From the IMG/VR virus record IMGVR_UViG_3300005965_000002, positions 62,001-126,000 of that record: a stretch of DNA of 64,000 nucleotides. One strand, 5' to 3'. Position 1 is the stretch's first letter; the number at the start of each line of letters is the position of its first letter. The notes under the pieces are model-generated. The model had not been told where the DNA came from, made no database searches, and worked only from the letters and a program-made list of their open reading frames with translations. This document shows positions 4,588 through 52,173 of the stretch, piece after piece. Made by a program: the position numbers and the translations under genes.

Positions 4588-4662
4588 ATTAAGCCTCCAA
4601 AAATAAGTAAAGTTTCGAGCGCAAGAGATAATATACTTTTTTAAAATGCCCGGTTTAAAGCA

Positions 4663-5760
4663 TTAACTAAAAAAATTATCTACCGTGTTTACGCACAGAG
4701 TATCGATATCGTTGATATTAGGTGACTTAGGTAGAGTAGATTTCTTATACAATTCTGTGAGTTTTTGGTCACAATCATGGGCATACTGCTCTATTTTGTC
4801 ATATGACCAAGCTCCGTTTCTGATAGCCCGTAGCTCATCAGCATCAATATCCGTACGGTCTACGTTTACCTTTTCGGTTTCTAAGATCTCAAGACCCATC
4901 CTCAAGAGTCGGACCAAGTGTGCGGCGTTTTTAGCGTCAAATCCGTATTTTTCTTCAAGCTCAGCACGAGCCTTATTTCTGGATTTTTTCCATTCATAGT
5001 ATCTATCCCAGTCTCTTTTAGCTTCATAATAGGCAACCTCTTTTTTGGCTTCCTGTACGTATTCCTCTTTGAGGTAATTATCCCCGAGAGATATAAACGT
5101 ATTAGCCTGGGCTTTAATGCCACACTGCAGCCATTCCAGAGCAGTTTTTCTTTGCTCCGGGATCAAAAACTGGGTATACAGAGGAATTACATAATCCCCG
5201 TAAAGCCTGTCTAACTCATCCAAAAAATTCTGTTTCTCTTCTTCTATAATAAATTCCAGAGCGGCACTTACTACTGCTTTAAGCTGAGAAGTCGGAAATA
5301 TTGAGGGATTTCTTAGGCCAAACTCTTCTCTTTCGGGTGATTTTTTAGGAGGATCTAAAAGAAATTTTCTATGGGTTTTTATGCGGTTAAGTTGTGCAAT
5401 TGCATACCCGGAAAAAGTATACCTGCATCTCTTAGTCACGAAGATATCTCTGTTTTCAATAAAAGTATCCCAGTAAGGGCTTCGGGTAATAACACATCTG
5501 TCCGGCATCCATAAAAGATCCATCATATTAGGATTGTTATCGGAAATCAACCTTAGAGCTTTACGGATATCATAGCAAACGCGATCTTTTTCTTCGAACC
5601 CACGAAACTGTTCAAACTTTTGAAATCCGAAAAAATATTCTTTACCTGGAATCATGACGCCTGCTTTATCATAATCTGATTCGGCATGGTGTATACCGTA
5701 AGCTCTGCTGCCTACTACAGTCTCAAATATGATTCTGGGTAATACATAAGAAATTTCCAC
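4663..5760 (-). CDS. Pol-beta superfamily nucleotidyltransferase (Nuc-transf/YcgL/RlaP-like)
   Basis: GSRAYG..SDYD motif, NNPN, C-terminal GFDAKNAAHLVRL..IRNG. Confidence 0.8.
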   Translation of the reverse strand: MEISYVLPRIIFETVVGSRAYGIHHAESDYDKAGVMIPGKEYFFGFQKFEQFRGFEEKDRVCYDIRKALRLISDNNPNMMDLLWMPDRCVITRSPYWDTFIENRDIFVTKRCRYTFSGYAIAQLNRIKTHRKFLLDPPKKSPEREEFGLRNPSIFPTSQLKAVVSAALEFIIEEEKQNFLDELDRLYGDYVIPLYTQFLIPEQRKTALEWLQCGIKAQANTFISLGDNYLKEEYVQEAKKEVAYYEAKRDWDRYYEWKKSRNKARAELEEKYGFDAKNAAHLVRLLRMGLEILETEKVNVDRTDIDADELRAIRNGAWSYDKIEQYAHDCDQKLTELYKKSTLPKSPNINDIDTLCVNTVDNFFS

Positions 5761-26820: not shown

Positions 26821-27219
26821 TTATTTTTTTAGATTGGTAATGTTCAGCCCGCTACCGCTGTATATTTTTGAGTGGTTATTTATGAAATCTACAGTTTCAG
26901 GGTCATCTAGATCTCCCCAGAAGCATAGATTGCGTAAAGGGCTCTGCACAATCATTTTTACCTCATCCATGTGGGGGAAATATGAGGAAAAGATAGTTAT
27001 TCCCCCCGGATCACCAAAAGTATACTCGGATCGGAAATACTCCTGTAGAGCTTCAAACATCGGAGACTCATCGTAACCGTGTATAATTTCATTACTTACG
27101 GTTAGGATGACGTGAGGCCGGTCTCCAGCGATAATAACTGCTTTAGATTCTCCTGATTCGCGTATTCTTCCGGATTCGTATACAAGTCTTGCAAAGTAAT
27201 TCCATCTCCGTTCATCCAT
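26821..27219 (-). CDS. Degenerate dCMP/cytidine deaminase-fold protein
   Basis: AVII..N..TIFSSYFPHMDEVKMIVQS matches the TLYxTxxPCxxCxKxIxQS pattern; HAE and PCxxC are absent. Confidence 0.55.
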   Translation of the reverse strand: MDERRWNYFARLVYESGRIRESGESKAVIIAGDRPHVILTVSNEIIHGYDESPMFEALQEYFRSEYTFGDPGGITIFSSYFPHMDEVKMIVQSPLRNLCFWGDLDDPETVDFINNHSKIYSGSGLNITNLKK

Positions 27220-30200
27220 CCTCTGATCCTTTCGTCGAACAGAGTGTTTCTTCTCTGTATCCGATCATTATTAATCGCTTGCTCTATAGCTGATCCTTGC
27301 CCTAAGACCACAACTTTTTTCTTGGCCCTTGTAATGGCGGTATACAAAAGATTTCTCTGAAGAATTCTCTGACCATGGGCGCGTACAATAGGCAGGATAA
27401 TCAAGGGATATTCTAAGCCCTGACTATTATGGGTTACATACCCATTCATCACATATGTATTATCGTGTTCTACCTCAATATCATACATATCTACTTCAGG
27501 TAATTTTTCTACTGATATTACTTTATCATAATTATAATCACTATTGTAATATGTGTTTTCAAACTTATAAAATAAGGAATTACCCTCATTGTGTCCTATT
27601 TGAGGATTTCTCAAAGCGCACAGGTAGTCGCCGTTTTTTATATTTCCCGCTTCTTTAAAGTAGATTCCAGAGGTATTGGCTACAAGGTGCCTATGCTCAA
27701 AACTAGAATCTACAAATGCTCCTGATTTAGTAGTAATTCTATAAACTTCCTTTTTCCCCACATGTACCTTGGATATTACCCTTTTTTTATTATTTTTACC
27801 TGTTAGCACTATATCACCTTTTTTTATGTCAGATAAAGGTATTATCCCTCGTTCAGTAAAGATTTTATTGTATCCAGGAGCGCATTTGTGTACACTTATT
27901 GCATAAGCTAATTTAAGCATATCATCCGCAAGCTTCATGGGGATTTCTACTCGTTTTGTTTTCCCATCAAACTCATCAATATCAATAACAATATTTCCTT
28001 CTACTATTAAAACGACCTTACCAATATCTCCATTAAATACATCTAGGTAGTAGTTGTTCTTTTTGATTAGTACCCGGTCGCCTTTTCGAATTATCATCCG
28101 GTTTAAAGAAACCTCTTTTTTGTTATCTGCTGGAGGGTTTAGCACACTCTGAAGCGCTACGTTAAGCGTTTCTACACTCAGAGGGCCATTATTCCTCGGG
28201 GTGATAATCTGGAAAAGCGTGGGTTCCTTTTTCTTTTTGTTTCCGTCCTTTATATGCTGAGCAAACCGTATGATTGTTTCTTCGATTGTTCCCATATTCT
28301 TTTCACGAAGGAACCATATATCAGCATGCTTATCTCTTTTAAATAGGGAAAGATCCGTATTGCCGTCTCTTATCCTTTTAGCGGCTTTGATGATGTCAGA
28401 CTGCTCTTCCTGCCGGAATATGGTTCTAAGCTGAATGACTTTAAAGCATGCGCAGCTAATTAAGTGCTTAAGTACGGTACCTGGGCCTACAGAAGGTAGC
28501 TGGTCATTATCCCCGACGAACACAATCTTTGTGTGGGAGAATAAGGCAGAAACCAGCCTGAAGAACACCTCCATATCAACCATGGAAGTCTCATCTACAA
28601 TGACTACCTTTGTATTGTACTTATTCAGAGCATGGTAGTCCCATTTATCTCCTTTATACCCTAGCTGTCTGTGTATCGTGCGTGCATCATAATTAGCCGT
28701 TTTAGCCAGCTTTTTAGCAGATATGCCGGTAGGTGTCAGTAGGTCAAAGCTTATATTCTTTCTCACCATGAGTTCTACAAGAGCTTTAACAATTGTTGTA
28801 TTGTGAGTTACTGTGAAATCTCCTAAAACAAATCGACCGTTTCCTGATATTTGAAACCCATAATATTTACCCTTTCCTATGCTTTTAATTTGTATCCCAG
28901 TAACTAGATTATCTTTAATTTGTTTTCTTTCCTCGGCTGTTTTTTTCTTAACCTTCGTTGGTATCTTACATAGACCATTACCAGAAATAGTAGCACGGTA
29001 ATAAGTGCCCTCTCCTGAATAGTATTTCCCTTTACTAAAGCATGAAAAGGATTTTTTGCATGGTTTAGGGTAAGCGCTGAATCCTAATGATCTAGCGATG
29101 AAAACTACATCGTTTAAAAGCTTTTCACTCTTAAATATTATGTCATAGCAGTTTCCTCTTTTATCATAAGATCCATCAGAATCGATTATACCAGCTAAAA
29201 GATTGAGTCTTATTTCTTCGCTGTTGGCCTTATATAAGTGGGGGACAGTTTTTGCTATTGTCAGCCCAGATTCTTGTAGATAATTCCAAAAAAAATTGGG
29301 CTTTCTTTTTCCCTTTAATTCTCCGTATGCTTTTGAATCCATATCACGGGATATGTGGTATTCAATATTATCTCCACTAACTTTTTTTATTGAAATTTCT
29401 GTCCCTCTTAGTATGGTATCGATAGCCTCAACTACTTCGGTAAACGGAGTACTTATTCTTGAGGCGTCTATAGCGCCGTTTCCTAACCACATACCGAGTA
29501 GGTATGGATGTATAGGTATATCTTTTGTTGGAAATTTAACAGGCACTCTGTACCCTTTTAGCCTTTCACGAAAGCTCTTGGCTAAAGAAAAATAAGTGTC
29601 TATGGATATATCGTGTATTTTTCCTTTACCTGACCCAGCATAGGTTGATTGCTTTAGAGAGAGAATATGAGACCTATTTACGACGTACTTATCTCCCTTT
29701 TTAGGAATAACTTCAAAAAGTTCTTCTTCCCCAGTCGCCGTGGAAAGAACTACCCTGGGGGTAGAGTCATCCCCCATCAGAACATCGTTTGTCTTTATAT
29801 CTTGAACTTCTTTAATTGTACCATCATACATTAGAACGGGTGTCCCGTAGCCTAAGCATTTACCTGTACCCGGGGAGCCTGTAATCACCATTACTTTTTC
29901 TTTTGTGAAAGATCTAATAGATTCTTTTTGATCCTCACTAAGATCCATGTGGTGGGCTTTTTCGTACTCGGATATAAATTCTTCTACGTTGAAATCCCCA
30001 AAATCGCACTCATCGTGCTTATCATAGATTTTCTTAAGTAGCCTGGCACTTTCATTTTCATAGAAAAACATGTTTATGTCGTAGTACCGGTTTTCGTCCT
30101 GGTAAATAAAGCCATCCTTTACCAGTCCTTCTATATGAGGCTCTATCTCAGAAAAAAGAACAACACCATTTTTGAATGGGTACTCAGAACTTTTATTGTA

Positions 30201-30920
30201 ATCATTGAATAGCTTGCTGATTTCAGCAGGCTGCAGGAACAGGTGTCCGGACTGCATACAGCTACGAAGCATAAAAAGGATAAAGTATCGGTATCTTAGC
30301 GGGTCCTGCGGAGATTTGCCTAGTTTGTGCGCCAGGTAATCGCAAGTGGTGAATCCGAATCCTTCAAAGCTTAAAAGATAGGGATTCTGCTTGATGACTA
30401 ATTCGGCATTGTAGCTATATTTCGATATGATTTTTTCTATTTTGAACTTAGAAAGCCCGAGGCTATGGAGGAATACTTTTACGGATTTTAACTCTTTATT
30501 TTCCTTCCACGCCTCAACAATATTTTCTACTATTTTTTCGCCTATACCCTCGATCTCAGTTAATCTTTCCGGGGTATTTTCAATGATATCTTCTATATCT
30601 TCTTTCTTAAAGTGCTCCGCTATGTCTCGGGCTCTTTCGGGTCCAATCCATTTTGCGATGGACTGTAAGTAGAGATAAATTCCCTGTAGTGAGTTATCGT
30701 GTGCGAAGGTATGGCTGAGAGCTTTGAATGTCATCCCGTATTTAGGGTGATTGAAGAAATCACCATGCACATCTACCATAGCGTTAGGTAGAAGATTTGG
30801 GAAAGAACCGGAAACCGAAATCCTAGCTCCGTCTTTCTGCGCAAGTATAAAAATTTTGAAGTCACCGTCTTGCGATTCAAATTTTATTTTGTTTACTTTT
30901 CCGGTGATAGTTTCCATCAT
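27102..30920 (-). CDS. recD2: RecD2-like SF1B helicase with two inteins
   Basis: HhH repeats, GSPGTGK|T, PTG.SA, TIHR, DETSM, VGD.DQLPSV, RQ, NGDIG, HK|SQG.EY, LLYTAITRAK. Confidence 0.93.
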   Translation of the reverse strand: MMETITGKVNKIKFESQDGDFKIFILAQKDGARISVSGSFPNLLPNAMVDVHGDFFNHPKYGMTFKALSHTFAHDNSLQGIYLYLQSIAKWIGPERARDIAEHFKKEDIEDIIENTPERLTEIEGIGEKIVENIVEAWKENKELKSVKVFLHSLGLSKFKIEKIISKYSYNAELVIKQNPYLLSFEGFGFTTCDYLAHKLGKSPQDPLRYRYFILFMLRSCMQSGHLFLQPAEISKLFNDYNKSSEYPFKNGVVLFSEIEPHIEGLVKDGFIYQDENRYYDINMFFYENESARLLKKIYDKHDECDFGDFNVEEFISEYEKAHHMDLSEDQKESIRSFTKEKVMVITGSPGTGKCLGYGTPVLMYDGTIKEVQDIKTNDVLMGDDSTPRVVLSTATGEEELFEVIPKKGDKYVVNRSHILSLKQSTYAGSGKGKIHDISIDTYFSLAKSFRERLKGYRVPVKFPTKDIPIHPYLLGMWLGNGAIDASRISTPFTEVVEAIDTILRGTEISIKKVSGDNIEYHISRDMDSKAYGELKGKRKPNFFWNYLQESGLTIAKTVPHLYKANSEEIRLNLLAGIIDSDGSYDKRGNCYDIIFKSEKLLNDVVFIARSLGFSAYPKPCKKSFSCFSKGKYYSGEGTYYRATISGNGLCKIPTKVKKKTAEERKQIKDNLVTGIQIKSIGKGKYYGFQISGNGRFVLGDFTVTHNTTIVKALVELMVRKNISFDLLTPTGISAKKLAKTANYDARTIHRQLGYKGDKWDYHALNKYNTKVVIVDETSMVDMEVFFRLVSALFSHTKIVFVGDNDQLPSVGPGTVLKHLISCACFKVIQLRTIFRQEEQSDIIKAAKRIRDGNTDLSLFKRDKHADIWFLREKNMGTIEETIIRFAQHIKDGNKKKKEPTLFQIITPRNNGPLSVETLNVALQSVLNPPADNKKEVSLNRMIIRKGDRVLIKKNNYYLDVFNGDIGKVVLIVEGNIVIDIDEFDGKTKRVEIPMKLADDMLKLAYAISVHKCAPGYNKIFTERGIIPLSDIKKGDIVLTGKNNKKRVISKVHVGKKEVYRITTKSGAFVDSSFEHRHLVANTSGIYFKEAGNIKNGDYLCALRNPQIGHNEGNSLFYKFENTYYNSDYNYDKVISVEKLPEVDMYDIEVEHDNTYVMNGYVTHNSQGLEYPLIILPIVRAHGQRILQRNLLYTAITRAKKKVVVLGQGSAIEQAINNDRIQRRNTLFDERIRGWMNGDGITLQDLYTNPEEYANQENLKQLLSLETGLTSS
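27426..27884 (-). mobile_element. Mini-intein (153 aa) in RecD2 motif V
   Basis: SVHK|CAPGYNKIFT...YVTHN|SQGLEY; no endonuclease. Confidence 0.92.
28800..29858 (-). mobile_element. LAGLIDADG intein (353 aa) in RecD2 Walker A
   Basis: GTGK|CLGYGTPVLM...VTHN|TTIV; LLGMWLGNG and LLAGIIDSDG. Confidence 0.95.
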
Positions 30921-30935
30921 CGCCCTTAATAAGTA

Positions 30936-31244
30936 CTAGTTCAGAGAATCGTTATCTATCCTGGATTTTGGTATCTTTATCTTAATCCCTAAGATCAGCT
31001 TAAAACCCGCTAACGTTATAGATACAAGTGTCAGAAGAGCTGATAAGCAAGCTATAGCAACTACTAAAATAGCAGCTGTATCAGCTACAATCCAAGAAAT
31101 ATCTCTTATTCGTGATCCTTCAGATAGCCCAAAAAGGAAAAATGCTGAAAGGGCTATAGCTGGGATTACTAATAGAAGACCTTTGAAGAAAGAATTCATA
31201 AAAATACCTAAAAGGGGAGTGCTAACCCTCATGGTATGTAGCAC
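30936..31244 (-). CDS. Small membrane protein (two hydrophobic segments)
   Basis: Two long hydrophobic stretches; start may be the downstream MNSFF. Confidence 0.55.
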   Translation of the reverse strand: MLHTMRVSTPLLGIFMNSFFKGLLLVIPAIALSAFFLFGLSEGSRIRDISWIVADTAAILVVAIACLSALLTLVSITLAGFKLILGIKIKIPKSRIDNDSLN

Positions 31245-31265: not shown

Positions 31266-31916
31266 TTAGTTCTGAATGTATTTACGATCAACGCGCACGA
31301 TGATATATTCACCAGGCTTGTACGTGGAGAATTTCATACCCTCACTGAATGCTTTTGCTGCATTAATTTCGAGGATTTCTACCCTGTCGCCCTCCCGTGT
31401 GGCAAACTTCGACGCAAAGTCGTTAGCCATCTCTGGAGTGTCATACAATTTGATGTACTTTTTTGTATGACTGCGTAGGCCTGTCTCCCGCATCCGACCT
31501 GCCAGGTTTTCCAGAGTACCAAAGTAAAGTGTATCAGGGGGTTGGACATACCGAACGATTTTGTACTTGATCTGGTTCTCCCCGTTGATGAGGATCTTCT
31601 GGTCTCTATCCTTGAAAAAGAACTCCACTACATGATTGTCATTGATGTAGTCAAGGTAAGGATGGAGGAAGACAACCACTTCTCTCATAGCCGGGATTGG
31701 TACGAATGCTTCTTGGTTATAAGGAAGCGAGTAGGATCTTCCTTCATTATCAAAAATCTCCAAGGAACCCGCGCAATTTTCACCATCACATTTGTCAGCT
31801 ACGCTCTTCAAAATATCAATAGAGCATAAAAGAGCTGTTTTGAGATCAGCGCTGCTTTTGAAAAGAGTTGGGGGTGACTTCTTAAACGGCGGTTTTTTGT
31901 TGTGATGCGGTATCAT
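31266..31916 (-). CDS. Degenerate RNA 2'-phosphotransferase (Tpt1/KptA)-like protein
   Basis: PPDTLYFGT..GL..KKYIKLY..ILEINA..GMKF..GEYI..V..KYI follows the KptA C-lobe pattern; start MIPHH has a GGAGG RBS. Confidence 0.7.
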   Translation of the reverse strand: MIPHHNKKPPFKKSPPTLFKSSADLKTALLCSIDILKSVADKCDGENCAGSLEIFDNEGRSYSLPYNQEAFVPIPAMREVVVFLHPYLDYINDNHVVEFFFKDRDQKILINGENQIKYKIVRYVQPPDTLYFGTLENLAGRMRETGLRSHTKKYIKLYDTPEMANDFASKFATREGDRVEILEINAAKAFSEGMKFSTYKPGEYIIVRVDRKYIQN

Positions 31917-31941
31917 TAACTTATCCTCCTGTGGTAGTTTA

Positions 31942-32373
31942 TTAGGATTCCGCTTTATTATTAGTATCACTACTAATGTTGGTTTCTTCTTCTTCTATTT
32001 CTTCTTCTTTTAGGGCTTCAGAGATATCAGATTCGGATAAAAGGACTTCTCTTTTAAGCAAACCAAATATCGTGGTATTTAGAAAACTGTTAACTACTCG
32101 GGTCTCTGTAAGAAGGTGCTGAATCATCTGGTTGATAGGAGATTCCTGATCCTTTAAAATATTCCTTACATTAGCCTTATCCCCATTAGCTAAACCAGAT
32201 AAAACTGTAGAGATATGCTCCATTGCTCGTACATTGAAGGAAATTTTCTTCTGAATAAAACCTTTCAGGTCTCGATTAATACCTTCCATGGAAAATGTAT
32301 AAGCTACTTCTTCTAACCGGCTATTATTCATTTCTTGATACTCTTGGAATTTCTTTTTGAGATCATCATTCAT
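31942..32373 (-). CDS. Hypothetical protein
   Basis: First ORF of the leftward block. Confidence 0.55.
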   Translation of the reverse strand: MNDDLKKKFQEYQEMNNSRLEEVAYTFSMEGINRDLKGFIQKKISFNVRAMEHISTVLSGLANGDKANVRNILKDQESPINQMIQHLLTETRVVNSFLNTTIFGLLKREVLLSESDISEALKEEEIEEEETNISSDTNNKAES

Positions 32374-32797
32374 ATTTTTAATCCTTAGGTGCAGTGATCA
32401 ACACTATGAATATACTGGTTTGCTCATTCTTTTTAAAGCGAATAAATGACATTTTTTGAGAAAATAAGAATATTTACTATTTTATAAACTGTATACTCGT
32501 TATTAATTATGACTTTTACCTTACCTAATAATTTACCAGAACCCAATATACTTTTTTAAATCATTACCTTACATATACTTTTTTAAAATTCAAAAAATAA
32601 AACCTATATATTAGTAATTATATTAATAATTACTCTTCTATTGTGTTTCCTCGAAGAGGAAATACAGTAGTAGCTATAAGAAATAAAGCTTAAACAGATG
32701 GCGACAAAAAATTAGAAAAAAGTTAGTAATGAGTAGATCTTACTTTAATTATGAAAATTTGATAAGTATATTGGAATAGATGTAAAGAAATCCAGGA
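32374..32797. promoter_or_regulatory. AT-rich divergent intergenic region at the strand switch (promoters, possible origin)
   Basis: Genes diverge here. Two ATATACTTTTTTAAA repeats, inverted repeat 32613-32634, hairpin 32638-32670, TTTGATAAGTATATTG at 32758. Confidence 0.6.
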
Positions 32798-35872: not shown

Positions 35873-36351
35873 TAGCCGAACCTTTATTTATTAGGTTTGT
35901 GAATGGTAAGATATCATCTCCAGGTATTATCGAATCCTTTAGGAATAATGCTGTAAATGATAAGACAAGAGATATAATAGAAGCAGCTACTGCTTCCCCT
36001 CCTAATTTAAGCGTTTTTAGAAAAGATTTTAGGAATTTATTAACAGATGTTATTGATAAAGGTATTACCCAGGATTTCATTAACTACGTAAATAGCTATA
36101 TGAAGCCCTCCATTGAGGAATATGTGCAGGGTTCGAGTGGTGGAAGGGCTGGTGAAAATAGGACGATAGGCATAAAGGATGAGGACACACCTTGGGTAGA
36201 GGCGGTAGTCTGTTATAATTTGTGCCTCTACATAAAAGTTGAGGGGATTGAGAAGATTAAACAGTGTGCTGTATGTAAAAAATTTTTCTGCCATAAAACT
36301 AAGTATGCCAAGTATTGTAATGATTCATGTAAGAGTAGAGGTAGAGAATGA
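35869..36351 (+). CDS. Protein with C-terminal CGNR-like Zn finger
   Basis: IKQCAVCKKFF..AKYCNDSC. Confidence 0.6.
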   Translation: MIAEPLFIRFVNGKISSPGIIESFRNNAVNDKTRDIIEAATASPPNLSVFRKDFRNLLTDVIDKGITQDFINYVNSYMKPSIEEYVQGSSGGRAGENRTIGIKDEDTPWVEAVVCYNLCLYIKVEGIEKIKQCAVCKKFFCHKTKYAKYCNDSCKSRGRE

Positions 36352-36872
36352 GGAAGAACCTCGTATTAGCTTTTGGCTTGCAGAATACTTACATGCATCA
36401 GGATGGCGCTATATCTTTAGGAGATAAAGCAGAAGTTTATAGATTCAGGATTAAAGATTATATACAGTCTTTAAATCAGGAAGTGAATAAGTTATACTTA
36501 TTAAGAGAAGTACACGCTCCTAATGATACTTTTTTCTGCCGCGACCGTACTCATTCTTTAGTCGGGAGTAAAGATGTAGAGGTCCCTGAAGTATTTAAAT
36601 CATATTTTAAATTTATCATCAATACGACACGATATAACGCTTTATATAAGACACCATTAGAATCAGAGATATTTAAAATTGACCCGGAAAAAATAGTATT
36701 GATAGGATTTGAAACCCATACTAATATCCTTTTTACTGCTGAGGAGTTAAGAAATAGAGGATATAATGTAACGGTAATTGAGCCTCTAGCAGCATCCAGA
36801 GATTTGACCTTGCATGCCTCAGCGATATCTCTATTAAGTGACACACTGTCTGTTTCTATTAGTCAGGAGTAA
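36348..36872 (+). CDS. Isochorismatase/nicotinamidase-fold protein lacking the catalytic triad
   Basis: LQNTY..DGAI, E.H, H..VGS, RYNALYKT.LE, GFET..IL.TA..RGY.V.V. Asp, Lys and Cys are replaced by Gly, Thr and Asn. Confidence 0.8.
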   Translation: MRKNLVLAFGLQNTYMHQDGAISLGDKAEVYRFRIKDYIQSLNQEVNKLYLLREVHAPNDTFFCRDRTHSLVGSKDVEVPEVFKSYFKFIINTTRYNALYKTPLESEIFKIDPEKIVLIGFETHTNILFTAEELRNRGYNVTVIEPLAASRDLTLHASAISLLSDTLSVSISQE

Positions 36873-43614: not shown

Positions 43615-45537
43615 ATGTCTTCACTTGGCGATATTTCCGGTTTCATGAAAGACTCCGGGGCCAAAGTCCCTGATTTGGACTGGCTCCAATTAGATGTTAA
43701 TAATAAGGACAATATTCCTGTCCCTATGAATGTTGAAATTGTTCCTCAGCTTGAAGAAGCGTGGGGACACGATAAAGTTGCTGGTACTACTCATCTGATA
43801 GAAAATCAGTCAGCTACCTACAACCCTTCTTTAGAGAAGAAGGCATCCGATGAAGATGTTAAAAAGGTAGTTGATGCAGCTAAGATAGAAATCATGAGGG
43901 GATCACTTGGTAAGGAACTAACCGAGAAACTAGGTAGCCAGTTCCCTCAAGAAGTAATAGTAGCTGCTAAGGATGAGCTGAAAAAGGTAGCTTCAGAGCA
44001 GGGACTTTTAGGAAGTGTCTACATAGACATCAGTCCTTTTAATTCATGTGCTGAGGCATCTAGAGTTTTGGGTCATAATAAGATTCGAATGGCTAGATAT
44101 GTTGTGGGAGAGCCCAAGAGGCATGTTTGCTCTTCTCATGCTACCGGAGTCTGTAAGGAACTCAAGAAAAAAGTTATTAGCAGCATGGAATATGATGAGG
44201 CTGTTTTAAATGAGTATACTACTCATTTAAAAATAGCGGGACTATTGAGCGCCGATGAAAAAGTTGTTAGTAGGGAAGGCCTGCGTAACGCTATCATAGC
44301 GTCAAAAATGCCTGCTAATAAAAAACAGGAACCTCAGAAAAAACAAGATAGTTCTGAGACTCAAATTGATGCTAGCAAACTTGATGAAAGTTTTGCCAAG
44401 CATCTTGAAAAAGAAGCAGCTGATATCCGTAAGTCTTATGAGTCAGATCGTTTTGAAGAAGCAAGACCTATAGTCGCTTTTATACAGAATGAAATGCTTA
44501 AGGGTAAGATCGGGAATTCTTTAAAAGAGTCAATTCAGAAGAATTTCCCACCGGATACCATTGAGAAGTTTTCTGCTGAGATTAAAAAGATCGCGTCCTT
44601 GCAGGGATTGATGGGTAATGTTTACGTGGATCTTGCTTATTATCCAAATGCTGAAGAAGCCGTAAAGTGTATTAAAACAGCGTCTACTAACCCAGCTTAT
44701 CTGATTAACACCAGACCTACTAATGAATTCGATAATAAGCTGGAAGTAGTAGCTAAGGCTACAGGGTGTCAGATTCTACCTAGAAATGGTGGTATAGATA
44801 AGAAGGTAGCTCATAGCTATATTGATGATCTTGCCTTTTCTGATAAGATTTCATTTGAGCTTTCAAAGGATCTTAAAAATAAGGTTGAGGCCGGAGAAAA
44901 TGTGTTGGCTATAATTAGAAATGCTTTTTTGGCCACACAGCAGCACACCAAGGCTGTTAAGGAAGGTGGAGTGCAAGGGTACTTTGCCTCAATGAATACA
45001 AGTAAATATAAGGATACAGAAAAAATTAAGACAGCCGCATATAAATCTATGGAAGCCGGTATTGAGTATGATAAGGTTTCTGCAAAGATGGCTGAGCTTA
45101 TGCCTACTACAGAAGCACTAAGTGCTGCTCGTACAGTTCTCGGTAGCATGAAAGAGGTTAAAGCTGATATCCTTAATAAGTGCAGCACTGATAAGTACCC
45201 CCTGGCTAAAGATGCTTCCATAGTGCAGGGTAGTAAATGTGCAAGTTGCATCCTCTCTACTGGTAATTCTTGCCTAAAACAGGAAAGAAAATTTGCCGGT
45301 AAAGAGAACATGGATAAACCCGTTGTGAACATCGACCCAAAAACATCGAAAGTCATTTACGATGAAAACCCTGACGTAAAAAGGGCGGACATAAATTCTG
45401 AATTTGAGATGTACGGAGATTTCGGTTCCGGAATGAATATCACCCTGAATGAAATGCGTGATCAGAAAAAAGAAGCAGGACTTGATATTGAAAACGGGTA
45501 CAACATGAATGGCCTGGATGCTGCCTTGTCCGACTAA
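43615..45537 (+). CDS. Putative head protein with internal duplication
   Basis: KKVASEQGLLGSVYID and KKIASLQGLMGNVYVD repeats; Cys clusters. Confidence 0.6.
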   Translation: MSSLGDISGFMKDSGAKVPDLDWLQLDVNNKDNIPVPMNVEIVPQLEEAWGHDKVAGTTHLIENQSATYNPSLEKKASDEDVKKVVDAAKIEIMRGSLGKELTEKLGSQFPQEVIVAAKDELKKVASEQGLLGSVYIDISPFNSCAEASRVLGHNKIRMARYVVGEPKRHVCSSHATGVCKELKKKVISSMEYDEAVLNEYTTHLKIAGLLSADEKVVSREGLRNAIIASKMPANKKQEPQKKQDSSETQIDASKLDESFAKHLEKEAADIRKSYESDRFEEARPIVAFIQNEMLKGKIGNSLKESIQKNFPPDTIEKFSAEIKKIASLQGLMGNVYVDLAYYPNAEEAVKCIKTASTNPAYLINTRPTNEFDNKLEVVAKATGCQILPRNGGIDKKVAHSYIDDLAFSDKISFELSKDLKNKVEAGENVLAIIRNAFLATQQHTKAVKEGGVQGYFASMNTSKYKDTEKIKTAAYKSMEAGIEYDKVSAKMAELMPTTEALSAARTVLGSMKEVKADILNKCSTDKYPLAKDASIVQGSKCASCILSTGNSCLKQERKFAGKENMDKPVVNIDPKTSKVIYDENPDVKRADINSEFEMYGDFGSGMNITLNEMRDQKKEAGLDIENGYNMNGLDAALSD

Positions 45538-45573
45538 GCAGCATTCAGCGTTTATATAACATAGGAGACATAT

Positions 45574-46260
45574 ATGCCAGATGATTCAATGGATCTCAAC
45601 TTAGACGAGATTCTTGAAACTGCTGAATTTGAGGATGAAAAAAATCCTATTGATATAGTAGAGAGAGAAAAGGGCGAAACAGAAGATATTAAGGATCTTG
45701 AATCCGAGATAGGTAAGGTACAAGAAAGCCATGATAAGGGTGAAGAGAGAGAATTAATAAACGAGCCCCAGGATCTTTTAGCTATTAATGTAAAAGGGCA
45801 CAGCCAGCTACAGCAGCTTATAGAAGACCCTTTAGAGAATGATGATCTATATCAGGCAATAGATAATGACGACCCCGCTCCGGCATTACTAAGGAGCGCC
45901 ATGAAGGAGTATGCAGAAGAGATAGCATACTTAAAGGCATGGAGGAAACATAATTATAAGTTAGACGCCGATATGACATCCGAGATATCTGATAAAAGGA
46001 TGAAAGCATTATTTAATCTTGTAAAGGCCGTACTTGAAAGAGAAAAGATAGCCAGTAAGCAAAGTAAAGGTAAGATAGATTTTCACGGAGAAAATTTTGC
46101 AAAGGTTTTTCAGTTTTTTCTCCAAGAGGTTCAGGAGACTTTTAAGACTGTAAATATACCAGAGCAGTATCAAAAGATCTTCTTTCCGCAGTTAGCAAAA
46201 CGACTGGACGGTTTTGAGAAAAAGGCGGAGAGGATATACTACGGGAAATCTCCTAGATGA
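45574..46260 (+). CDS. Putative terminase small subunit
   Basis: Helical protein overlapping the start of terL; positional inference only. Confidence 0.4.
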   Translation: MPDDSMDLNLDEILETAEFEDEKNPIDIVEREKGETEDIKDLESEIGKVQESHDKGEERELINEPQDLLAINVKGHSQLQQLIEDPLENDDLYQAIDNDDPAPALLRSAMKEYAEEIAYLKAWRKHNYKLDADMTSEISDKRMKALFNLVKAVLEREKIASKQSKGKIDFHGENFAKVFQFFLQEVQETFKTVNIPEQYQKIFFPQLAKRLDGFEKKAERIYYGKSPR

Positions 46261-48134
46261 GCATAGCTGAAATATGCGCTAACATGTCATCCGAAGAGGG
46301 TGTCGATACCAGTAAAATTCTGCATAAAGATGCTATGGAGTTTATTACTGCTCCGTGGGGTCTTGGGATGGGAACTGTACCAGGTGTTCCTTCGTTATAT
46401 CCCGCACAGAGATTTATCATTAAAATGTACTACGGGTTGGAATTAGATAATGGTTCTAATCGTGATATTATAATAAAAGATCAGTTCAACGAAGAAGAAA
46501 TTTACAGATTTAATGAGAAAGAGTATCAGGATTATCTTTTCTCCGAAGGTCGTATAAATAAGGATACTGAAAATAACTGGTTTACTGATCTTACCTTGGT
46601 TATGGGCAGGAGGGCCGGAAAAACTATGCTCACTTCTTGTATAATTTCTTATGAATTATACAAGCTTCTTTCGTATTATTGCCCTCAGGAATTTTACGGT
46701 ATAGTTCCTGAGTCTGAGATACGAGTGACGTGTGTAGCTACAAGCAAAGAAACAGCGGGTGAGCTCTTTAATGCGATTACTGGAAATATTGAGAGATCAG
46801 AGTTTTTTAGAAAGTTTAGAGGAAAACCTACTAAGCAGAGCATGTCTCTAAGAACACAGAGAGACTTGGATAAATATGGTGAGACCGGTAGAGCTACTCT
46901 TTCTATTCATGTGGCTCCATGCAGCGCTAAGGGTCTTCGCGGACATAATAACATTATTGTGGCTCTCGACGAGGTCGCATTCTTTTTTGAGGATGAGAAA
47001 AAAGAAGGAAAAAATTCAGCAAGCGACAGAAACGACCGAGCTATTTATAAAGCTGTTACCCCTTCTGTAGCTAAGTTCCAGGGAAAAGACGGTAAGCCCC
47101 ATGGTAAAATTATTTGTATATCGTCTCCTAATACAAAATCCGGTAAGTTCTTTGAATTGTATGAAAACTCATTTGGTGAGAATACAAAAAATCAGCTTAT
47201 GATACAAGCCCCTACGTGGGAGCTTGATAGTAACTTATCCTCAGAGTTTTTACATAATGAGTATAACTCAAATAGATCTAATTTTTATGTTGAGTACGGA
47301 GCACAGTTTAGTGATAGAGTAAAGGCATGGATAGAAGATCCAATAATAGTACGCCAAAATATAGTACCGGGTCTTATATACATAAAAAGAAGTAGTAACA
47401 GAATACCTCATTTTATGGGAATAGATATAGGACTAAAAGAGGACGGAACCGCTATTTGTATATGCCATCATGAAGAAGAGCTGGTAAACGGGGTACGTGA
47501 GAATTTAATCCAAGTAGACGACTGCCAGGTAAGGTTCGCACATGATGAGGGTAAAAAACATTTCACCCCGCAGGAGTTAGCTGACTGGCTCCATAGTTTT
47601 ACTAATAATTTCTTCATAGTCAAAGCTTTAATGGACCAATATTATGGGATGGGGATTATACCTCTTTTAGAAGATAAAGGCTTAAGACAGTTTGAGTATA
47701 GAATTTTTACTGAGACGCTGAATTCTCAGATTTATCAAAACCTACTCACTCAAATGATATCTTCAAATCTTAGGATTCCTGAAGAAGAAAGAGTGGTTGA
47801 CGGTAAAATTGAAAAAGATTCAGCTCTTGTGCAGGAGCTTCTTTCATTACAAGCTTATCAGAAGAGCAAGTATATAGTAAAGGTAGAAGCCCCGGATAGA
47901 AAAAACGCACACGATGACCGTTCAGATGCTTTCGCTCGTGCGGTCCTTCTAGCAACTGAATACAAAATTAGAGGTAAGGGAGGAAAGGTGGCTGCAGCTA
48001 GCTCAGGAAGAGCTCACAGCCATACTTTACTAAGATCGCTGGAAAGACGAAAAATTGATCTAAACAGACCCACAAGAGGTAGAATGCCATCCAGGACGGG
48101 AATGGGAGCAGGCTCTTTGGGGTTAAGACGATAG
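46257..48134 (+). CDS. terL: Terminase large subunit
   Basis: GRRAGKT, LRG, VALDE, ISSP, EYGAQF, GIDIG..D and HDD motifs. Confidence 0.92.
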   Translation: MSIAEICANMSSEEGVDTSKILHKDAMEFITAPWGLGMGTVPGVPSLYPAQRFIIKMYYGLELDNGSNRDIIIKDQFNEEEIYRFNEKEYQDYLFSEGRINKDTENNWFTDLTLVMGRRAGKTMLTSCIISYELYKLLSYYCPQEFYGIVPESEIRVTCVATSKETAGELFNAITGNIERSEFFRKFRGKPTKQSMSLRTQRDLDKYGETGRATLSIHVAPCSAKGLRGHNNIIVALDEVAFFFEDEKKEGKNSASDRNDRAIYKAVTPSVAKFQGKDGKPHGKIICISSPNTKSGKFFELYENSFGENTKNQLMIQAPTWELDSNLSSEFLHNEYNSNRSNFYVEYGAQFSDRVKAWIEDPIIVRQNIVPGLIYIKRSSNRIPHFMGIDIGLKEDGTAICICHHEEELVNGVRENLIQVDDCQVRFAHDEGKKHFTPQELADWLHSFTNNFFIVKALMDQYYGMGIIPLLEDKGLRQFEYRIFTETLNSQIYQNLLTQMISSNLRIPEEERVVDGKIEKDSALVQELLSLQAYQKSKYIVKVEAPDRKNAHDDRSDAFARAVLLATEYKIRGKGGKVAAASSGRAHSHTLLRSLERRKIDLNRPTRGRMPSRTGMGAGSLGLRR

Positions 48135-48144
48135 GATAGAAAAA

Positions 48145-51100
48145 ATGTCACAAAAATTTCAGGATCAGTTTTATTCTAACATAATAGTATACGATGAAAG
48201 AAAAAGGTACTATTACTTGTGGGCTCGTAAGAATAAGCCTTTGTTAGATGATGAGATTAGAAATTCTCAGTTAGCTATAGTAGATCAGGTTCGTCGCTCT
48301 ATCCAAAATGTGAGCGGTGATGTTTGCGTCCCTATCTCTCCGTATTCAACTAATAATCAGACAAACCCTTTTTCTATTACAGTTCCCGATGTGTATTCAG
48401 ACAATTTTATAGTAAAGGGAGGAAATGGGTTAGAGGCTCCCGCTGTAATGTTTGTAAAAGGATTTTACGTATTCTTGCCTGGAGATATTACATATAGAAA
48501 TCAGAATGATGCTGGTGGTAAATCAATAACGGATGAAGAGTACACAAAGACACCAATACCTGATATTTCAGAACCAAATGAGGATCGTATTGATATTATT
48601 TATGTCGATCTTCATTTTGGAGAGGTGTCTGCTACAGACTTAACTGAATATAAAGATACTAATTTAAGAAATCCTATAGTTGGAACGGAAACAGCAAATA
48701 GGCTAAGAGCTGTTTTTGATATTAGAATTTTAGAGGGGTTTACGTCATCTATAGATGAGAATATATTTAATAGACCCGAATTTTTAGGATCTATATCAAG
48801 TGATGACCCGGAAGCTAATCCTATATATAAAGAGCATTTTAAGGTTCCTATAGCAGTAGTATACAGGGAAGCCAACAAACCGTTAGATTCAAGTACTAAG
48901 ATAGTAGATCTACTTTCACTATATAACAAAAGAATACTTTCTTTAAATGAGATTACTTACAGAACCCTGCACGGAGGTTATGGAGAGACCGCTGTATATG
49001 AGCTAGGGATAAACCAGAACAATCCTAGATTCCCTCACGCTAAGTTAGATGAGGGGGCTTATGCTACAGGACTCAATCAGGGATTCGATACACAGGCATT
49101 TAATACTGATTCCGTAACTCCTCGCGTCCTCGATTCCGATGGTAAATTTGCTGTGGGAGGCCTCCTCGTCGGAAGAGAAGACTCTGAAAAAACGTATCCC
49201 ATTACCTCTGAGACTGGCCCGGTAGGATTATCTGATGGCGAAGCAATGGCGAATCAGATATCTTCAAAATCCGTATATATAGGATATGATAGAGGAGTCA
49301 CAGGATTAAGAGAATACCATGATCGTCTTAATATCCATATGCAAGGCATTACTGGGTTTGCTGGTCTAAGGATTATAAACGAAACCGGGGAAACAGGATC
49401 CATATCTGCCCATATAAAAGGAAAATCCGGTTCAGACGAAAATAATGTGTTTATCGATTATTTGGGTAGGTTAGGGATAAACACTCAGTATCCAGGGTGG
49501 ACCGCTGTAAATACTTTATGGAACACATCAGATGATAATATCGTTTTAGATGTTAATGATTCTGTAAGAATATGGCGGAACCAGTTTATTAAAGGTGACC
49601 AGTATATAGAAGGTAGTGCCTTTGGACAGGGGTGGCAAATACCGCAAAACCCTGAGGCACGTACCCCGGCTGCGTTTGGGTTTACCGGTATCACAAATCA
49701 GACAAGTGGAGTGATTCCAACAGATGATCTAGGTATTACGGGCAGAGCCGCTGTATACTTCAAACCGGGTGTGGCTGTTGTAGGTCACAAGGATGTTCCT
49801 GGGTATACAGGAAATTTTGGTTTTTATGAGGCTTTTGATTCTGATGGCGGCAGAGTTTTCACTATCGGTAGTTTAGGTGAAGATTTTGATAGGACTGTAA
49901 GAACTCTCTTTGGAGTAGGTTTTAGAACTCTATTTTTGACAGATTACAGTTTGTTATACCTACCACAGGGATATGGTCAAATCACGGGAGCAGATTCTCC
50001 ATGGGATCCTGATAAATTAGAAGTTACAGGTTTTGATTATAACGGTAATTTGGTCAATTTTACATATGAGATGCAGTCAACTGTAGGGTTAACCGGTATT
50101 TTTGAATTTGGGCAAGCGCTTGAAAACAATTTCCCCCAAACTAAAGCCCAGATAATACTGGACCCATTTGATGAATCTAGGGATCCGGGCGATAGAGCCG
50201 AGACACACGGGCAGTTAATTATAAAGGATTTGCAGGATAGGTCCTCTTTTAACATAAAATCAGTAAAACTTTATAGGGATAATTGGTTCACACCCCCCGG
50301 AGGCGGTGACTACTTAGAAATCCCTATGGTTGAGTCAAAATTTTTTGGATCCGGTAACCTAGGCGGTAATGTACTTGATCTTAAGTTCGCCAAACTTGAT
50401 CTTGGTGAAGCTGCTAACGCTTGGTTATTTAACGGAGACGTTTTCTTTAATGGTATCGGTGAACTCAATAGAGTCACATTTAGCCCCAACGTTCTTTTCC
50501 GGAACGATGTCTTCGTATATGGAAACTTTGTAGCAGATAGCTTGCTTTTTAATTACGCTAAAGTTAATAGTATGCAAGTTAATAATCAGCTAAAAGTAGA
50601 TGATGATCTAGCTGTTGGAGAGCATGCTGTTTTTGGTTATGATCTGGATGTGGCTTTTTCAAGGCTGAATTTGCAAATAAATATTAACGAAAATCTTACT
50701 TTACTAAATAACGGAGATATGCTGTCTGCTAAATACATAGCTCAGACGACAGGAGACTATGATGATGTTGACATAGATGTCTACGGAAGTTTTATAACAC
50801 AAACTAGAAGATATGGTTATGATCTCAGTCTGAAAATAGGTGGAAAATTCGGGAGTGATACAGACCCCTTAGGAATACATCTGATAGATAATAGATCAGG
50901 CATAACTTTAAATTCCGGGGATAGTCCTGATACTATAGTGTTTGACTACGGAAACGGTAGGGGTGATTACGGGACTCTTAATATAAATGTGAGGGGTAAT
51001 CTAACAGCTTCACAAGGAGTTTTGGCTGCAAACGTATCAGCGGGATCCGATCTCACGGAAGCTAACACTGATTATGCCCTCTATGTAAGCGGTGACAGCC

Positions 51101-52173
51101 GCATAGTAGGAACATTAACTGTTAACCAAATTAAGTACACAGGGAGTGAGGCTTCTGAAGACGGAGACCAAATAACTACTCCTCCTAATGTCAATGTTAT
51201 TGAAAGAAGTCAAGAATTTGTCATTGAGCCTCAAGGTGATATCTTAAGAACCAAAAAGTTTTCTTTATCCACAAAGGTTCTTCTTAACAATTCCGGTGGG
51301 TTGGGCGGTTCCCTGTACGAGTCATATGAATCGAATCCACCAACAGTCACCGAAGCGGATGTTTCTAGTACTACAGCTCTATTCGCGCATGATAACTTAA
51401 CGTATACGCAAGATGCTTTTAATGGAGATTATAGTCAAGATGAAGCTACTATCGAGCTTCGAGCAAGCGACTTTACTGACTCCTCTGTGCCAGAAGTGTT
51501 CCGGAGAAATTTCGACAGAATAACTATAGTTACATTAGGCACTCTTAGATCTACATTTGTCGGGTATGTGAGGGGTACGGATTACGGTATATCTAATGCC
51601 GATAAAGATAGCAGGGATCCAGCAAAAATAGTGCAGTCCTATGAATTTGAAAGCAGGTATTTTAGGAATAAGAACGGTGGTAGCATCATTAATTGGTTGC
51701 CTTCCTCATCAGGATCTAGCTCCAGATTTGGAGACGAGAACCTCATAGCTAAAGTAGAAGCCGATCTTATAGGTACTCATCCAAATAGACCAGAGATATA
51801 CCATATAGACAAACCCATAGCGGTTTTTCTACCACTCGATGTGTGGGAAAGGTATTGTATTAGATATCCGGATGCTTCAGATGCTTACACATACTCACTT
51901 TATTACCCTAAAGAAAATTTGATAGATAATTTAAACAGGGCAAAGTTTGAACAGTTAACAAGCTTCTCTAACACTGACGGCACTCCCGAAGATGAGTGGT
52001 TTTTAACTTTATACCCACAGCTTAACAATGTCACATCTGTAGCCTTTGCAGGTAGTAACAGTGATAGGTTGTATCGGGCAGAGTGGGATTTAAACATTAT
52101 AGTATACTCCAAAATATACGGTAAATGCTCTAATTTGATAGGTAATATAAACGTTTCTTATATGCAGGGATAA
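48145..52173 (+). CDS. Large virion structural protein (tail fibre/baseplate-like)
   Basis: N-terminal KPLLDDE and R.DIIYVDL..EV..D.L..ETANRL pattern; GRLGINT and beta-helix-like G/N/D-rich body. Confidence 0.6.
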   Translation: MSQKFQDQFYSNIIVYDERKRYYYLWARKNKPLLDDEIRNSQLAIVDQVRRSIQNVSGDVCVPISPYSTNNQTNPFSITVPDVYSDNFIVKGGNGLEAPAVMFVKGFYVFLPGDITYRNQNDAGGKSITDEEYTKTPIPDISEPNEDRIDIIYVDLHFGEVSATDLTEYKDTNLRNPIVGTETANRLRAVFDIRILEGFTSSIDENIFNRPEFLGSISSDDPEANPIYKEHFKVPIAVVYREANKPLDSSTKIVDLLSLYNKRILSLNEITYRTLHGGYGETAVYELGINQNNPRFPHAKLDEGAYATGLNQGFDTQAFNTDSVTPRVLDSDGKFAVGGLLVGREDSEKTYPITSETGPVGLSDGEAMANQISSKSVYIGYDRGVTGLREYHDRLNIHMQGITGFAGLRIINETGETGSISAHIKGKSGSDENNVFIDYLGRLGINTQYPGWTAVNTLWNTSDDNIVLDVNDSVRIWRNQFIKGDQYIEGSAFGQGWQIPQNPEARTPAAFGFTGITNQTSGVIPTDDLGITGRAAVYFKPGVAVVGHKDVPGYTGNFGFYEAFDSDGGRVFTIGSLGEDFDRTVRTLFGVGFRTLFLTDYSLLYLPQGYGQITGADSPWDPDKLEVTGFDYNGNLVNFTYEMQSTVGLTGIFEFGQALENNFPQTKAQIILDPFDESRDPGDRAETHGQLIIKDLQDRSSFNIKSVKLYRDNWFTPPGGGDYLEIPMVESKFFGSGNLGGNVLDLKFAKLDLGEAANAWLFNGDVFFNGIGELNRVTFSPNVLFRNDVFVYGNFVADSLLFNYAKVNSMQVNNQLKVDDDLAVGEHAVFGYDLDVAFSRLNLQININENLTLLNNGDMLSAKYIAQTTGDYDDVDIDVYGSFITQTRRYGYDLSLKIGGKFGSDTDPLGIHLIDNRSGITLNSGDSPDTIVFDYGNGRGDYGTLNINVRGNLTASQGVLAANVSAGSDLTEANTDYALYVSGDSRIVGTLTVNQIKYTGSEASEDGDQITTPPNVNVIERSQEFVIEPQGDILRTKKFSLSTKVLLNNSGGLGGSLYESYESNPPTVTEADVSSTTALFAHDNLTYTQDAFNGDYSQDEATIELRASDFTDSSVPEVFRRNFDRITIVTLGTLRSTFVGYVRGTDYGISNADKDSRDPAKIVQSYEFESRYFRNKNGGSIINWLPSSSGSSSRFGDENLIAKVEADLIGTHPNRPEIYHIDKPIAVFLPLDVWERYCIRYPDASDAYTYSLYYPKENLIDNLNRAKFEQLTSFSNTDGTPEDEWFLTLYPQLNNVTSVAFAGSNSDRLYRAEWDLNIIVYSKIYGKCSNLIGNINVSYMQG

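Follow-up and report, generated by a model that had tools for sequence, protein, structure and literature searches.

What role can a Tpt1/KptA-like protein have in a huge phage when the residues on which Tpt1 catalysis depends have been replaced? The question is raised by a 216-aa protein (P0001, here called T) that is encoded in a 64,000-nt stretch of IMG/VR virus record IMGVR_UViG_3300005965_000002. This stretch, which we refer to as the window, comprises bases 62001-126000 of the 258,580-bp record, whose CheckV completeness is ~55%. We find that T is no Tpt1 orthologue, but belongs to a Tpt1-derived family of pseudoenzymes or neo-enzymes that is encoded next to a RecD2-type helicase. In our favoured reading, to which we assign a probability of about 0.4, T is a non-catalytic binder of a phosphate-bearing nucleotide or nucleic-acid end that operates within the RecD2 helicase module.

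Gene and Domain Organization of T

T is encoded by an open reading frame (ORF) of 216 codons plus stop, as read from the ORF listing and its translation. The original prediction had placed the gene at exactly these coordinates without giving a strand, which is the minus strand. The start codon, an ATG at 31916, lies 25 nt beyond the stop of the upstream gene, U, and has a Shine-Dalgarno sequence in front of it. A longer frame opening with a GTG at 31970 was rejected, since it would overlap the upstream gene and finds no support in the N-termini of the homologues. The parts of the gene that are used below, with the evidence for each in parentheses, are as follows.

31266..31916, minus strand: coding sequence of T, Tpt1/KptA-like (ORF and translation, homologues, AlphaFold2 (AF2) model, fold matches)
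31925..31930, minus strand: Shine-Dalgarno sequence AGGAGG, 8 nt 5' of the ATG (direct sequence reading)
31857..31916, minus strand: N-terminal tail, residues 1-20, basic and of low confidence (predicted local distance difference test (pLDDT), charge calculation)
31554..31856, minus strand: N-lobe, residues 21-121, winged-helix, counterpart of the Tpt1 RNA lobe (VIA alignment; profile alignment from D-x-x-G-F)
31608..31649, minus strand: helix-3 signature Y-I-N-[RD]-N-H-[IV]-V-E-x-[YF]-F-K-D, residues 90-103 (family alignment)
31560..31598, minus strand: wing hairpin K-I-L-I-N-G-x-x-x-I-K-Y-K, residues 107-119 (HMMER alignments to 8tfi and 6e3a)
31269..31553, minus strand: C-lobe, residues 122-216, ADP-ribosyltransferase (ART)-like, counterpart of the Tpt1 NAD+ lobe (profile scans, structure matches)
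31515..31526, minus strand: Y-F-G-T, residues 131-134, where Tpt1 has Y-H-G-T (alignments, family columns)
31443..31466, minus strand: T-K-K-Y-I-K-L-Y, residues 151-158, where Tpt1 has x-R-x-Y-V-H-L-S (alignments, family columns)
31407..31409, minus strand: K170, near-invariant, aligned to the phosphate contact Arg133 of PhoTpt1 (alignment; PMC12170183)
31305..31313, minus strand: G-E-Y, residues 202-204, with E203 at the position of the triad Val (alignment to N-G-V-W-L of RslTpt1, family columns)

The N-terminal tail has a net charge of about +5 and a pLDDT <50 over residues 1-8, and the N-lobe contains a variable beta-hairpin insert at residues ~43-70.

The Tpt1 Fold of T

Scanned as a single sequence, T resembles the Tpt1 families at scores below the curated cut-offs: it matches PF01885 with an E-value of 3.7e-4 (21 bits, against a gathering score of 26 bits) and its best NCBIfam entry, NF002014, with 3.6e-11 (43.2 bits, against a cut-off of 239), and it matches PHROG 5470 with 6e-10. 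A profile built from 30 family sequences aligns to C. thermocellum Tpt1 (PDB 6ede/6e3a) with an E-value of 4.7e-11, and the alignment runs through both lobes, from D-x-x-G-[FW] to the C-terminus. The AF2 model made from the family alignment has a mean pLDDT of 90.9, and the best 22 matches that Foldseek returned for it from the PDB are all Tpt1/KptA (top match 3.8e-11), as are the closest viral structures in BFVD and the closest ESM-Atlas clusters. VIA-align superposes residues 22-216 of the model on Tpt1 with Z 16.4, aligning 166-170 of ~178 residues. The global root-mean-square deviation (rmsd) of 10-12 Å is high because the two lobes differ in relative orientation; the C-lobe alone fits yeast Tpt1 with an rmsd of 2.2 Å. 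The similarity far exceeds chance, and T is a genuine Tpt1/KptA derivative with both lobes, as the original prediction had proposed from spacing and hydrophobic pattern; an unrelated fold is contradicted.

Beyond Tpt1, structural matches to the N-lobe only were obtained for La, the Rpa2 winged helix and C34 (Z 6-7), and the ART core of the C-lobe (residues 124-216) superposes on pertussis toxin S1, DarT, Arr and cholera toxin (Z 6.4-7.8, rmsd 2.3-2.7 Å). T has the two-lobe fold of Tpt1, then, and departs from Tpt1 in its curated scores and in the catalytic tetrad and NAD+-binding H-H-V motif that are considered next.

A Remodelled Active Site

An R-H-R-R tetrad is essential in the yeast, E. 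coli and Runella Tpt1 enzymes (PMC6097658), and is formed by R23/H24/R71/R138 in the yeast enzyme (Sce) and by R14/H15/R62/R115 in the P. horikoshii enzyme (Pho; PMC6097658, PMC12170183). The phosphates in PhoTpt1 are held by Arg14, His15, Lys60, Arg62, Tyr74, Arg115 and Arg133, and the same tetrad residues contact the 5'-PO4 in the capping reaction of Tpt1 (PMC12170183). Its Arg-His dyad orients the 2'-PO4 and 3'-PO4 and has been proposed as general acid (PMC6333775, PMC12170183); an R16A change makes step 1 380-fold and step 2 710-fold slower (PMC6333775). The H-H-V motif (Sce His117, His142 and Val187; PMC10415124) holds NAD+, which is also contacted by the Thr of HGT, an Ile/Gln sandwich around the adenine and the main chain of a Gly (PMC10415124, PMC6333775). 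In contacting the adenosine 2'-OH, the His of HGT is reportedly redundant with the Thr (PMC6333775).

Tpt1 residues were mapped onto T by HMMER sequence alignments combined with the family columns, a procedure in which the C. thermocellum (Cth) and Pho templates disagree by one residue in the wing hairpin. All four tetrad residues are altered family-wide. Arg14-His15 has no counterpart in helix 1 of T, where residues 33-38 (I-D-I-L-K-S) are hydrophobic or variable in the family, in line with the earlier remark that there is no LRH. The third tetrad residue (Arg62/68) corresponds to K107, near-invariant, in the Pho register, or to the Q/R/H position 106 in the Cth register, and the fourth (Arg115) corresponds to K152, which is invariant and never Arg. 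Among the other phosphate contacts, Lys60 is replaced by D105, Tyr74/80 is represented by the invariant Y118, and Arg133 by the near-invariant K170. Each remaining phosphate-contacting Arg has been replaced by Lys (K107, K152, K170).

The NAD+ triad has become F132-K156-E203. F132 is invariant in the core family and conserved across a more distant, extended clade, three sequences of which have Y or A; K156 is K, rarely R; and E203 is E in nearly all core members and absent in part of the extended clade. By way of the Tpt1 Val, E203 aligns with the site at which H-Y-E ARTs have their catalytic Glu, an equivalence given by alignment only (PMC10415124). The adenosine pocket is mostly retained (T134, L138, M142, G146): the Thr of HGT (Thr103, the 2'-OH contact) corresponds to T134, Ile111 of the adenine sandwich to M142 and Gly115 (Cth; the main-chain contact) to G146, all of them invariant, as is G133. 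The GHS of IRAxYGHS is deleted.

The original prediction had described the active site as "erased", because HGT reads FGT, RxHVHLS reads KKYIKLY, KxRF reads DQKI and the IRA motif reads IKYKIV. The alignments bear out the first two of these substitutions: F132 stands for the His of HGT, and in the second motif the tetrad Arg has become K152 and the triad His K156. The third is true in the P. horikoshii register, where the tetrad Arg is matched by K107; the alignment to C. thermocellum is shifted by one residue. The change in the IRA motif is real as well, but its register was off by one to two residues, as HMMER aligns IRAxY to (N)QIKY, which brings Y118 to the position of Tyr74/Tyr80 and leaves GHS deleted; the conclusion is unaffected. 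What the alignments contradict is the word "erased", given near-invariant Lys residues at the Arg sites, the retention of Y118, T134, M142 and G146, and the gain of E203. Judged from sequence, the site is remodelled rather than erased. Since the Arg-His dyad is lost and the same residues engage the 5'-PO4, both known Tpt1 reactions, and with them canonical Tpt1 activity, are very unlikely for T. The FGT motif alone is no proof that nucleotide binding has been lost, given the reported redundancy of the HGT His with the Thr.

Conservation within the Family

A word-index search found 35 relatives of T with 39-75% identity, on contigs up to 258 kb, and a profile search of 1.84 billion representatives gave 526 matches, of which the 17 below 1e-30 form the core family (about 17 clusters at 50% identity). 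The relatives of T number ~45, all on metagenomic huge-phage contigs; a tblastn comparison of T with 50,697 GenBank phage records gave no match. The extended "FGT" clade contributes ~20 more representatives, which keep Y90/H95/E98 and P-P-x-x-L-Y-F-G-T. Canonical Tpt1 sequences (P-P-Y-H-G-T, R-x-Y-V-H-L-S, G-V-W) enter the profile matches from about 1e-12 downward. Some metagenome pipelines label relatives of T "RNA:NAD 2'-phosphotransferase".

The core-family alignment (30 sequences, 40% mean column identity) has 23 invariant and 25 near-invariant columns, which cluster at cleft positions. T134, K152 (never Arg) and Y154 are strictly invariant, and E203 is near-invariant. The replacement residues, invariant or nearly so among the ~45 relatives, are under strong purifying selection, and T represents a retained fold with lost catalytic residues. 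The core family is basic (median isoelectric point (pI) 8.9), and the charges of its lobes resemble those of canonical Tpt1.

Y90, H95 and E98 are shared by the core family, the extended FGT clade and both copies of an N-lobe that is duplicated in one sub-branch. Here the winged-helix lobe occurs in tandem, with the helix-3 signature in both copies, and is followed by a single ART-like lobe, giving proteins of ~300 aa (270-320 aa). The sub-branch consists of P0016, P0018, P0019, P0021, P0024, P0026, P0031, P0036 and P0038, with examples at L006:10001-10882 and L008:3956-4849.

Genomic Context

In the window, T belongs to a minus-strand operon with the order U, T, M and RecD2/YrrC helicase. Its other members, and the spacer that separates it from a divergent operon, are listed here.

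31942..32373, minus strand: U, 143 aa, a helical hairpin with an acidic tail, first gene of the operon and kept in 8 loci (AF2 model)
30936..31232, minus strand: M, a small protein with two predicted transmembrane segments, of uncertain start (31244, 31232 or 31199; ORF and locus comparison)
27102..30920, minus strand: RecD2/YrrC-type helicase, 1272 aa, with two insertions (conserved downstream neighbour of T)
32374..32797, no strand: AT-rich spacer of 424 bp between the T/RecD2 operon and the clamp-loader operon (coincides with a sign change in GC skew)

T is found upstream of the RecD2/YrrC helicase in 11 of 11 loci, even at 28% identity, and is either adjacent to it or separated from it by a gene for a protein with two transmembrane segments. 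The full U-T-M-RecD2 order occurs in L002/L003, L004/L005, L006, L007, L008 and L011, which are phages of 190-410 kb, and the stop and start codons of T/M and of M/helicase frequently overlap. M is present in core-family loci and absent from the distant FGT clade; in three extended-clade loci (L009, the P0053 contig and L015), M is missing and 7-63 nt separate T from the helicase downstream of it. The operon continues in related loci with RuvC, RecA, SbcC-like, SbcD-like and PD-(D/E)XK genes, and the divergent operon encodes holB, holA, an isochorismatase-family gene, a Toprim/primase fragment, dnaX and a 5'-3' exonuclease. The context of T is DNA replication and recombination, not RNA repair. 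Neither RtcB, nor a PF09414 RNA ligase, nor a Macro domain was found in the 258-kb record, a result that is provisional at ~55% completeness, and the record contains no second PF01885 gene.

The AF2 model of U (from an 8-sequence alignment) has a pLDDT of 79.5 and shows two long helices. U, M and the other small neighbours have no match in Pfam or NCBIfam. A PADLOC scan of T, U, M, the isochorismatase-family protein and an RlaP-like protein encoded elsewhere in the window gave no match in a library of defence, not anti-defence, systems.

The spacer could be the site of promoters or of an origin. It contains a perfect 15-nt direct repeat, ATATACTTTTTTAAA (copies 27 nt apart), and a 12-nt repeat, TTACCTTACCTA / TTACCTTACATA; these are short two-copy repeats only, with no clear iteron array in the spacer. 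We also considered RecD2 as the replicative helicase, with T as its loader or origin binder, a proposal that is weakened by a DnaB-type helicase elsewhere in the genome and by the lack of clear iterons in the spacer.

Two distant huge phages have the same helicase with other genes in front of it. In L012 (512 kb; L012:1311-5026) and L013 (442 kb; L013:1444-4715), the genes that lie upstream of RecD2 encode an NAD+-dependent DNA ligase, a protein with an SLT lytic-transglycosylase domain and two further small proteins, and no T homologue was found there. Proteins of 168-171 aa 5' of RecD2 in these phages were considered as cryptic T homologues and rejected, with hmmsearch E-values of at least 0.44. 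In L004, an otherwise collinear clamp-loader operon is interrupted by a gene for a 361-aa Cas12f1-like/TnpB-type protein (PF07282; L004:4179-5264).

A Proposed Role for T

RecD2 helicases load onto 5' single-stranded tails. In the reading that we favour, T would be a neofunctionalised paralogue of Tpt1/KptA that has become a core gene in one clade of huge phages. It retains the two-lobe architecture, with a winged-helix lobe, an ART-like lobe and a basic cleft between them. Having lost the Arg-His dyad, which positions and protonates the 2'-phosphate, T would be neither an NAD+-dependent 2'-phosphotransferase nor a 5'-phosphate capping enzyme. The cleft that remains is predicted to be lined by Lys and Tyr residues (K107, K117, Y118, K119, K152, Y154, K156, Y158 and K170), next to what may still be an adenosine-type pocket (T134, L138, M142, G146). 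With these elements T could read a phosphate-bearing nucleotide or nucleic-acid end. A 5'-phosphorylated single-stranded tail, for example of DNA, would be an attractive specific ligand because it is on such tails that RecD2 helicases load. T would be co-expressed with, and would assist, the RuvC/RecA/SbcCD recombination proteins and the adjacent 5'->3' RecD2-type helicase, possibly through physical contact with the helicase.

The original prediction had likewise taken T for a non-catalytic binder, of RNA ends or of ADP-ribose derivatives. The loss of canonical activity holds, with the tetrad gone, and binding is the most economical interpretation of the site, new catalysis being unlikely; the RNA-repair setting does not hold, as T lies in a RecD2 operon.

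Several observations weigh against our reading. The whole replication module is collinear across these phages, and the adjacency of T and the helicase, which is suggestive and no proof, may reflect shared ancestry rather than functional coupling. Co-folding of T with RecD2 (the L002 pair, 203 + 762 aa) was run twice, each time with an interaction prediction score from aligned errors (ipSAE) of 0.00, where the mark is 0.32; this in itself is evidence neither way. The N-lobe of T from the window is net acidic. The extended FGT clade, which occupies the same genomic slot, is acidic as a whole (median pI 5.7), has no K-rich second motif (no K156) and often lacks E203, so that a simple DNA-binding role cannot hold superfamily-wide. 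In addition, the pattern of T134, K152, Y154 and E203 looks more like the site of an enzyme or of a specific small ligand than like a generic nucleic-acid surface.

Alternative Explanations

If the site is that of an enzyme, T might be an active, Tpt1-derived ADP-ribosyltransferase or other NAD+-using protein with new chemistry; this is the main rival, which we consider unlikely, though far from negligible. Such an enzyme would use E203 in the manner of H-Y-E ARTs and bind NAD+ through Thr134 and Lys152, and its acceptor would be found among DNA or RNA bases, nucleic-acid ends and the proteins of replication and recombination. The residues concerned are conserved as one would expect: E203, at the position of the PARP-type catalytic Glu, is Glu in nearly all core members; K152, Y154, K156 and Y158, invariant or nearly so, lie on one face of strand beta-2; and T134, L138, M142 and G146 of the adenosine pocket are kept. 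The His of HGT, which T lacks, reportedly duplicates the 2'-OH contact of the Thr (PMC6333775). The phage also has genes for NAD+ supply or use (NadE, PncB, the isochorismatase-family protein, LigA). On the other hand, we know of no active ART with Phe at the first motif position, and the distant FGT clade fills the same slot without K156 and often without E203. The H117A-T119A and R138A mutants of ScTRPT1 lose NAD+ binding (PMC10415124), and no macro-domain reversing enzyme was found in the record, NADAR and ARH not having been searched for. A related proposal is that T is an NAD+-linked DNA-end factor, whose Lys/Lys/Glu cleft ADP-ribosylates or reads phosphorylated or ADP-ribosylated DNA ends and hands them to the RecD2-type helicase in recombination-dependent replication. 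We think this quite improbable; if it were true, the phage's NAD+ salvage would be tied directly to its own DNA metabolism.

If instead the site is that of a small ligand, T could be, in line with the second option of the original prediction, a non-catalytic sponge or sensor that acts against NAD+- or ADP-ribose (ADPR)-based host defence by binding a soluble NAD+-derived molecule, such as ADPR, ADPR-phosphate, the 1''-2'' cyclic phosphate of ADP-ribose (Appr>p) or glycocyclic ADPR (gcADPR). An ART-like lobe with a partly kept adenosine and phosphate pocket, whose residues are invariant, would suit such a ligand, and NAD+ salvage genes, which this phage carries, are a typical counter to NAD+ depletion (PMC7824862). 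This role is nevertheless improbable, as T is fixed and syntenic within a core replication and recombination module in 11 loci rather than in a variable anti-defence island, is coupled in translation with genes for a membrane protein and a helicase, and has a winged-helix lobe, duplicated in tandem in some members, that would have no obvious role; the absence of a PADLOC match points the same way, weakly, as that library covers defence rather than anti-defence. Two simpler explanations carry far less probability. That T is an ordinary, merely divergent Tpt1/KptA RNA 2'-phosphotransferase, as the pipeline names of some relatives and the weak matches to PF01885 and PHROG 5470 would have it, is exceedingly improbable given scores below every curated cut-off (21 vs 26 bits in Pfam, 43 vs 239 in NCBIfam), an essential tetrad (PMC6097658) that is changed at all four positions family-wide, and a 258-kb record in which RNA ligase, RtcB and macro partners were not found. 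That T is a decaying relic without function would account for the lost catalytic residues, but is scarcely credible for a gene with an intact frame, a strong ribosome site and a confidently folded model, with 48 columns that stay invariant or nearly so even when relatives of ~40% identity are included, and with a position that is conserved across phages of 190-410 kb.

Comparison with Known Systems

The closest known relatives of T are the Tpt1/KptA/TRPT1 enzymes (PF01885; PDB 6e3a, 8tfz, 9ld4), with which it shares the winged-helix and ART-like lobes, the order of secondary structure elements, and the motifs D-x-x-G-[FW], P-P-x-x-L-Y-x-G-T and G-[IL]-x-[SP], as well as the Tyr of IRAxY, the Thr of HGT and the Ile/Met of the adenine sandwich. 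It differs from them in its tetrad, with no counterpart of the Arg-His pair and with K107 and K152 for the other two Arg residues, in its F-K-E triad and in the deletion of GHS. A longer helix 1, a basic N-terminal tail and a new helix-3 signature (Y-I-N-R-N-H-I-V-E) also set T apart. Finally, Tpt1 is associated with RNA repair through RNA ligase, 2H or Macro partners, whereas T belongs to a RecD2 DNA operon. The KptA proteins of phage tRNA repair (PHROG 5470) are likewise viral and of the same superfamily; T differs from them in lacking the catalytic residues, and RNA-repair partners were not found in its record. In full-text literature searches we found no conserved, catalytically remodelled KptA/Tpt1 branch tied to a RecD2 operon, and the passages on KptA in two jumbo-phage surveys present it solely as an enzyme that is active in RNA repair and goes together with RNA ligases and with 2H, Macro or Nudix domains (PMC7824862, PMC9503650).

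Two further ART-fold proteins offer partial parallels. Pseudo-ARTs such as PARP13/ZAP have a degenerate H-Y-E triad, and in them the ART fold has been selected for a non-catalytic role in nucleic-acid biology. PDB 4x52, which we take to be a pseudo-ART of the PARP13/ZAP type, matches T with Z 5.9 in the structure comparison. PARP13/ZAP is eukaryotic, belongs to the PARP clade and lacks the Tpt1 winged-helix lobe, and the substituted residues of T, unlike those of PARP13/ZAP, are invariant and polar. The ART core of DarT, a thymidine ADP-ribosyltransferase that acts on single-stranded DNA (PDB 7omw, 8baq), superposes on the C-lobe of T with Z 6.5-6.8 and an rmsd of ~2.5 Å over 87-88 residues; DarT has a catalytic Glu. 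However, no sequence relationship between the two was detected, DarT has no winged-helix lobe, and DarT is a toxin with a DarG partner, whereas T has no such partner.

Other Genes of the Record

The record contains a Preiss-Handler-type set of NAD+ salvage genes (window 3..5760, minus strand; window 36348..36872, plus strand; G000:C1 ~254156). NadE, a glutamine-dependent NAD synthetase with an intein (3..2996, minus strand), extends past the edge of the window, and PncB, a nicotinate phosphoribosyltransferase (2971..4587, minus strand), scores above the NCBIfam equivalog cut-offs. The isochorismatase-family protein, which is encoded within the clamp-loader operon and conserved in all related loci, is possibly a nicotinamidase, and an NAD+-dependent DNA ligase (LigA) elsewhere in the genome is counted with this set; the DnaB-type helicase is likewise encoded outside the T locus. 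A gene for NMNAT/NadD (PF01467) was not found in the record. The adenylyltransferase step, which would then be missing, might be supplied by an RlaP-family Pol-beta nucleotidyltransferase (4663..5760, minus strand), whose gene directly adjoins those of PncB and NadE.

Inteins are unusually dense, and occur in the RecD2-like helicase, the large subunit of ribonucleotide reductase, NadE and a further protein of 1147 aa. The helicase (27102..30920, minus strand) has 1272 aa, compared with ~760 aa in intein-free orthologues; the ribonucleotide reductase gene (5986..9519, plus strand) contains intein domains, and the 1147-aa protein (52696..56139, plus strand) contains Intein_splicing and LAGLIDADG_3 domains. 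Three large consecutive ORFs of 640, 625 and 1342 aa at 43615..52173 (plus strand) have no Pfam match at E <= 1e-5, and may encode structural or virion proteins.

Implications

Hitherto Tpt1/KptA has been known as an enzyme of RNA repair and of nucleic-acid end ADP-ribosylation. For the proteins described here, the label "RNA:NAD 2'-phosphotransferase" is functionally wrong and should not be propagated. T is a tractable subject, with about 200 aa, a confident fold and clear targets for point mutants in F132, K152, K156, E203 and H95/E98. If its family reads phosphorylated DNA or RNA ends, or NAD+-derived nucleotides, beside RecD2, it would constitute a new accessory factor in the replication and recombination of huge phages, and would provide a clean case of an ART-fold enzyme put to another use.

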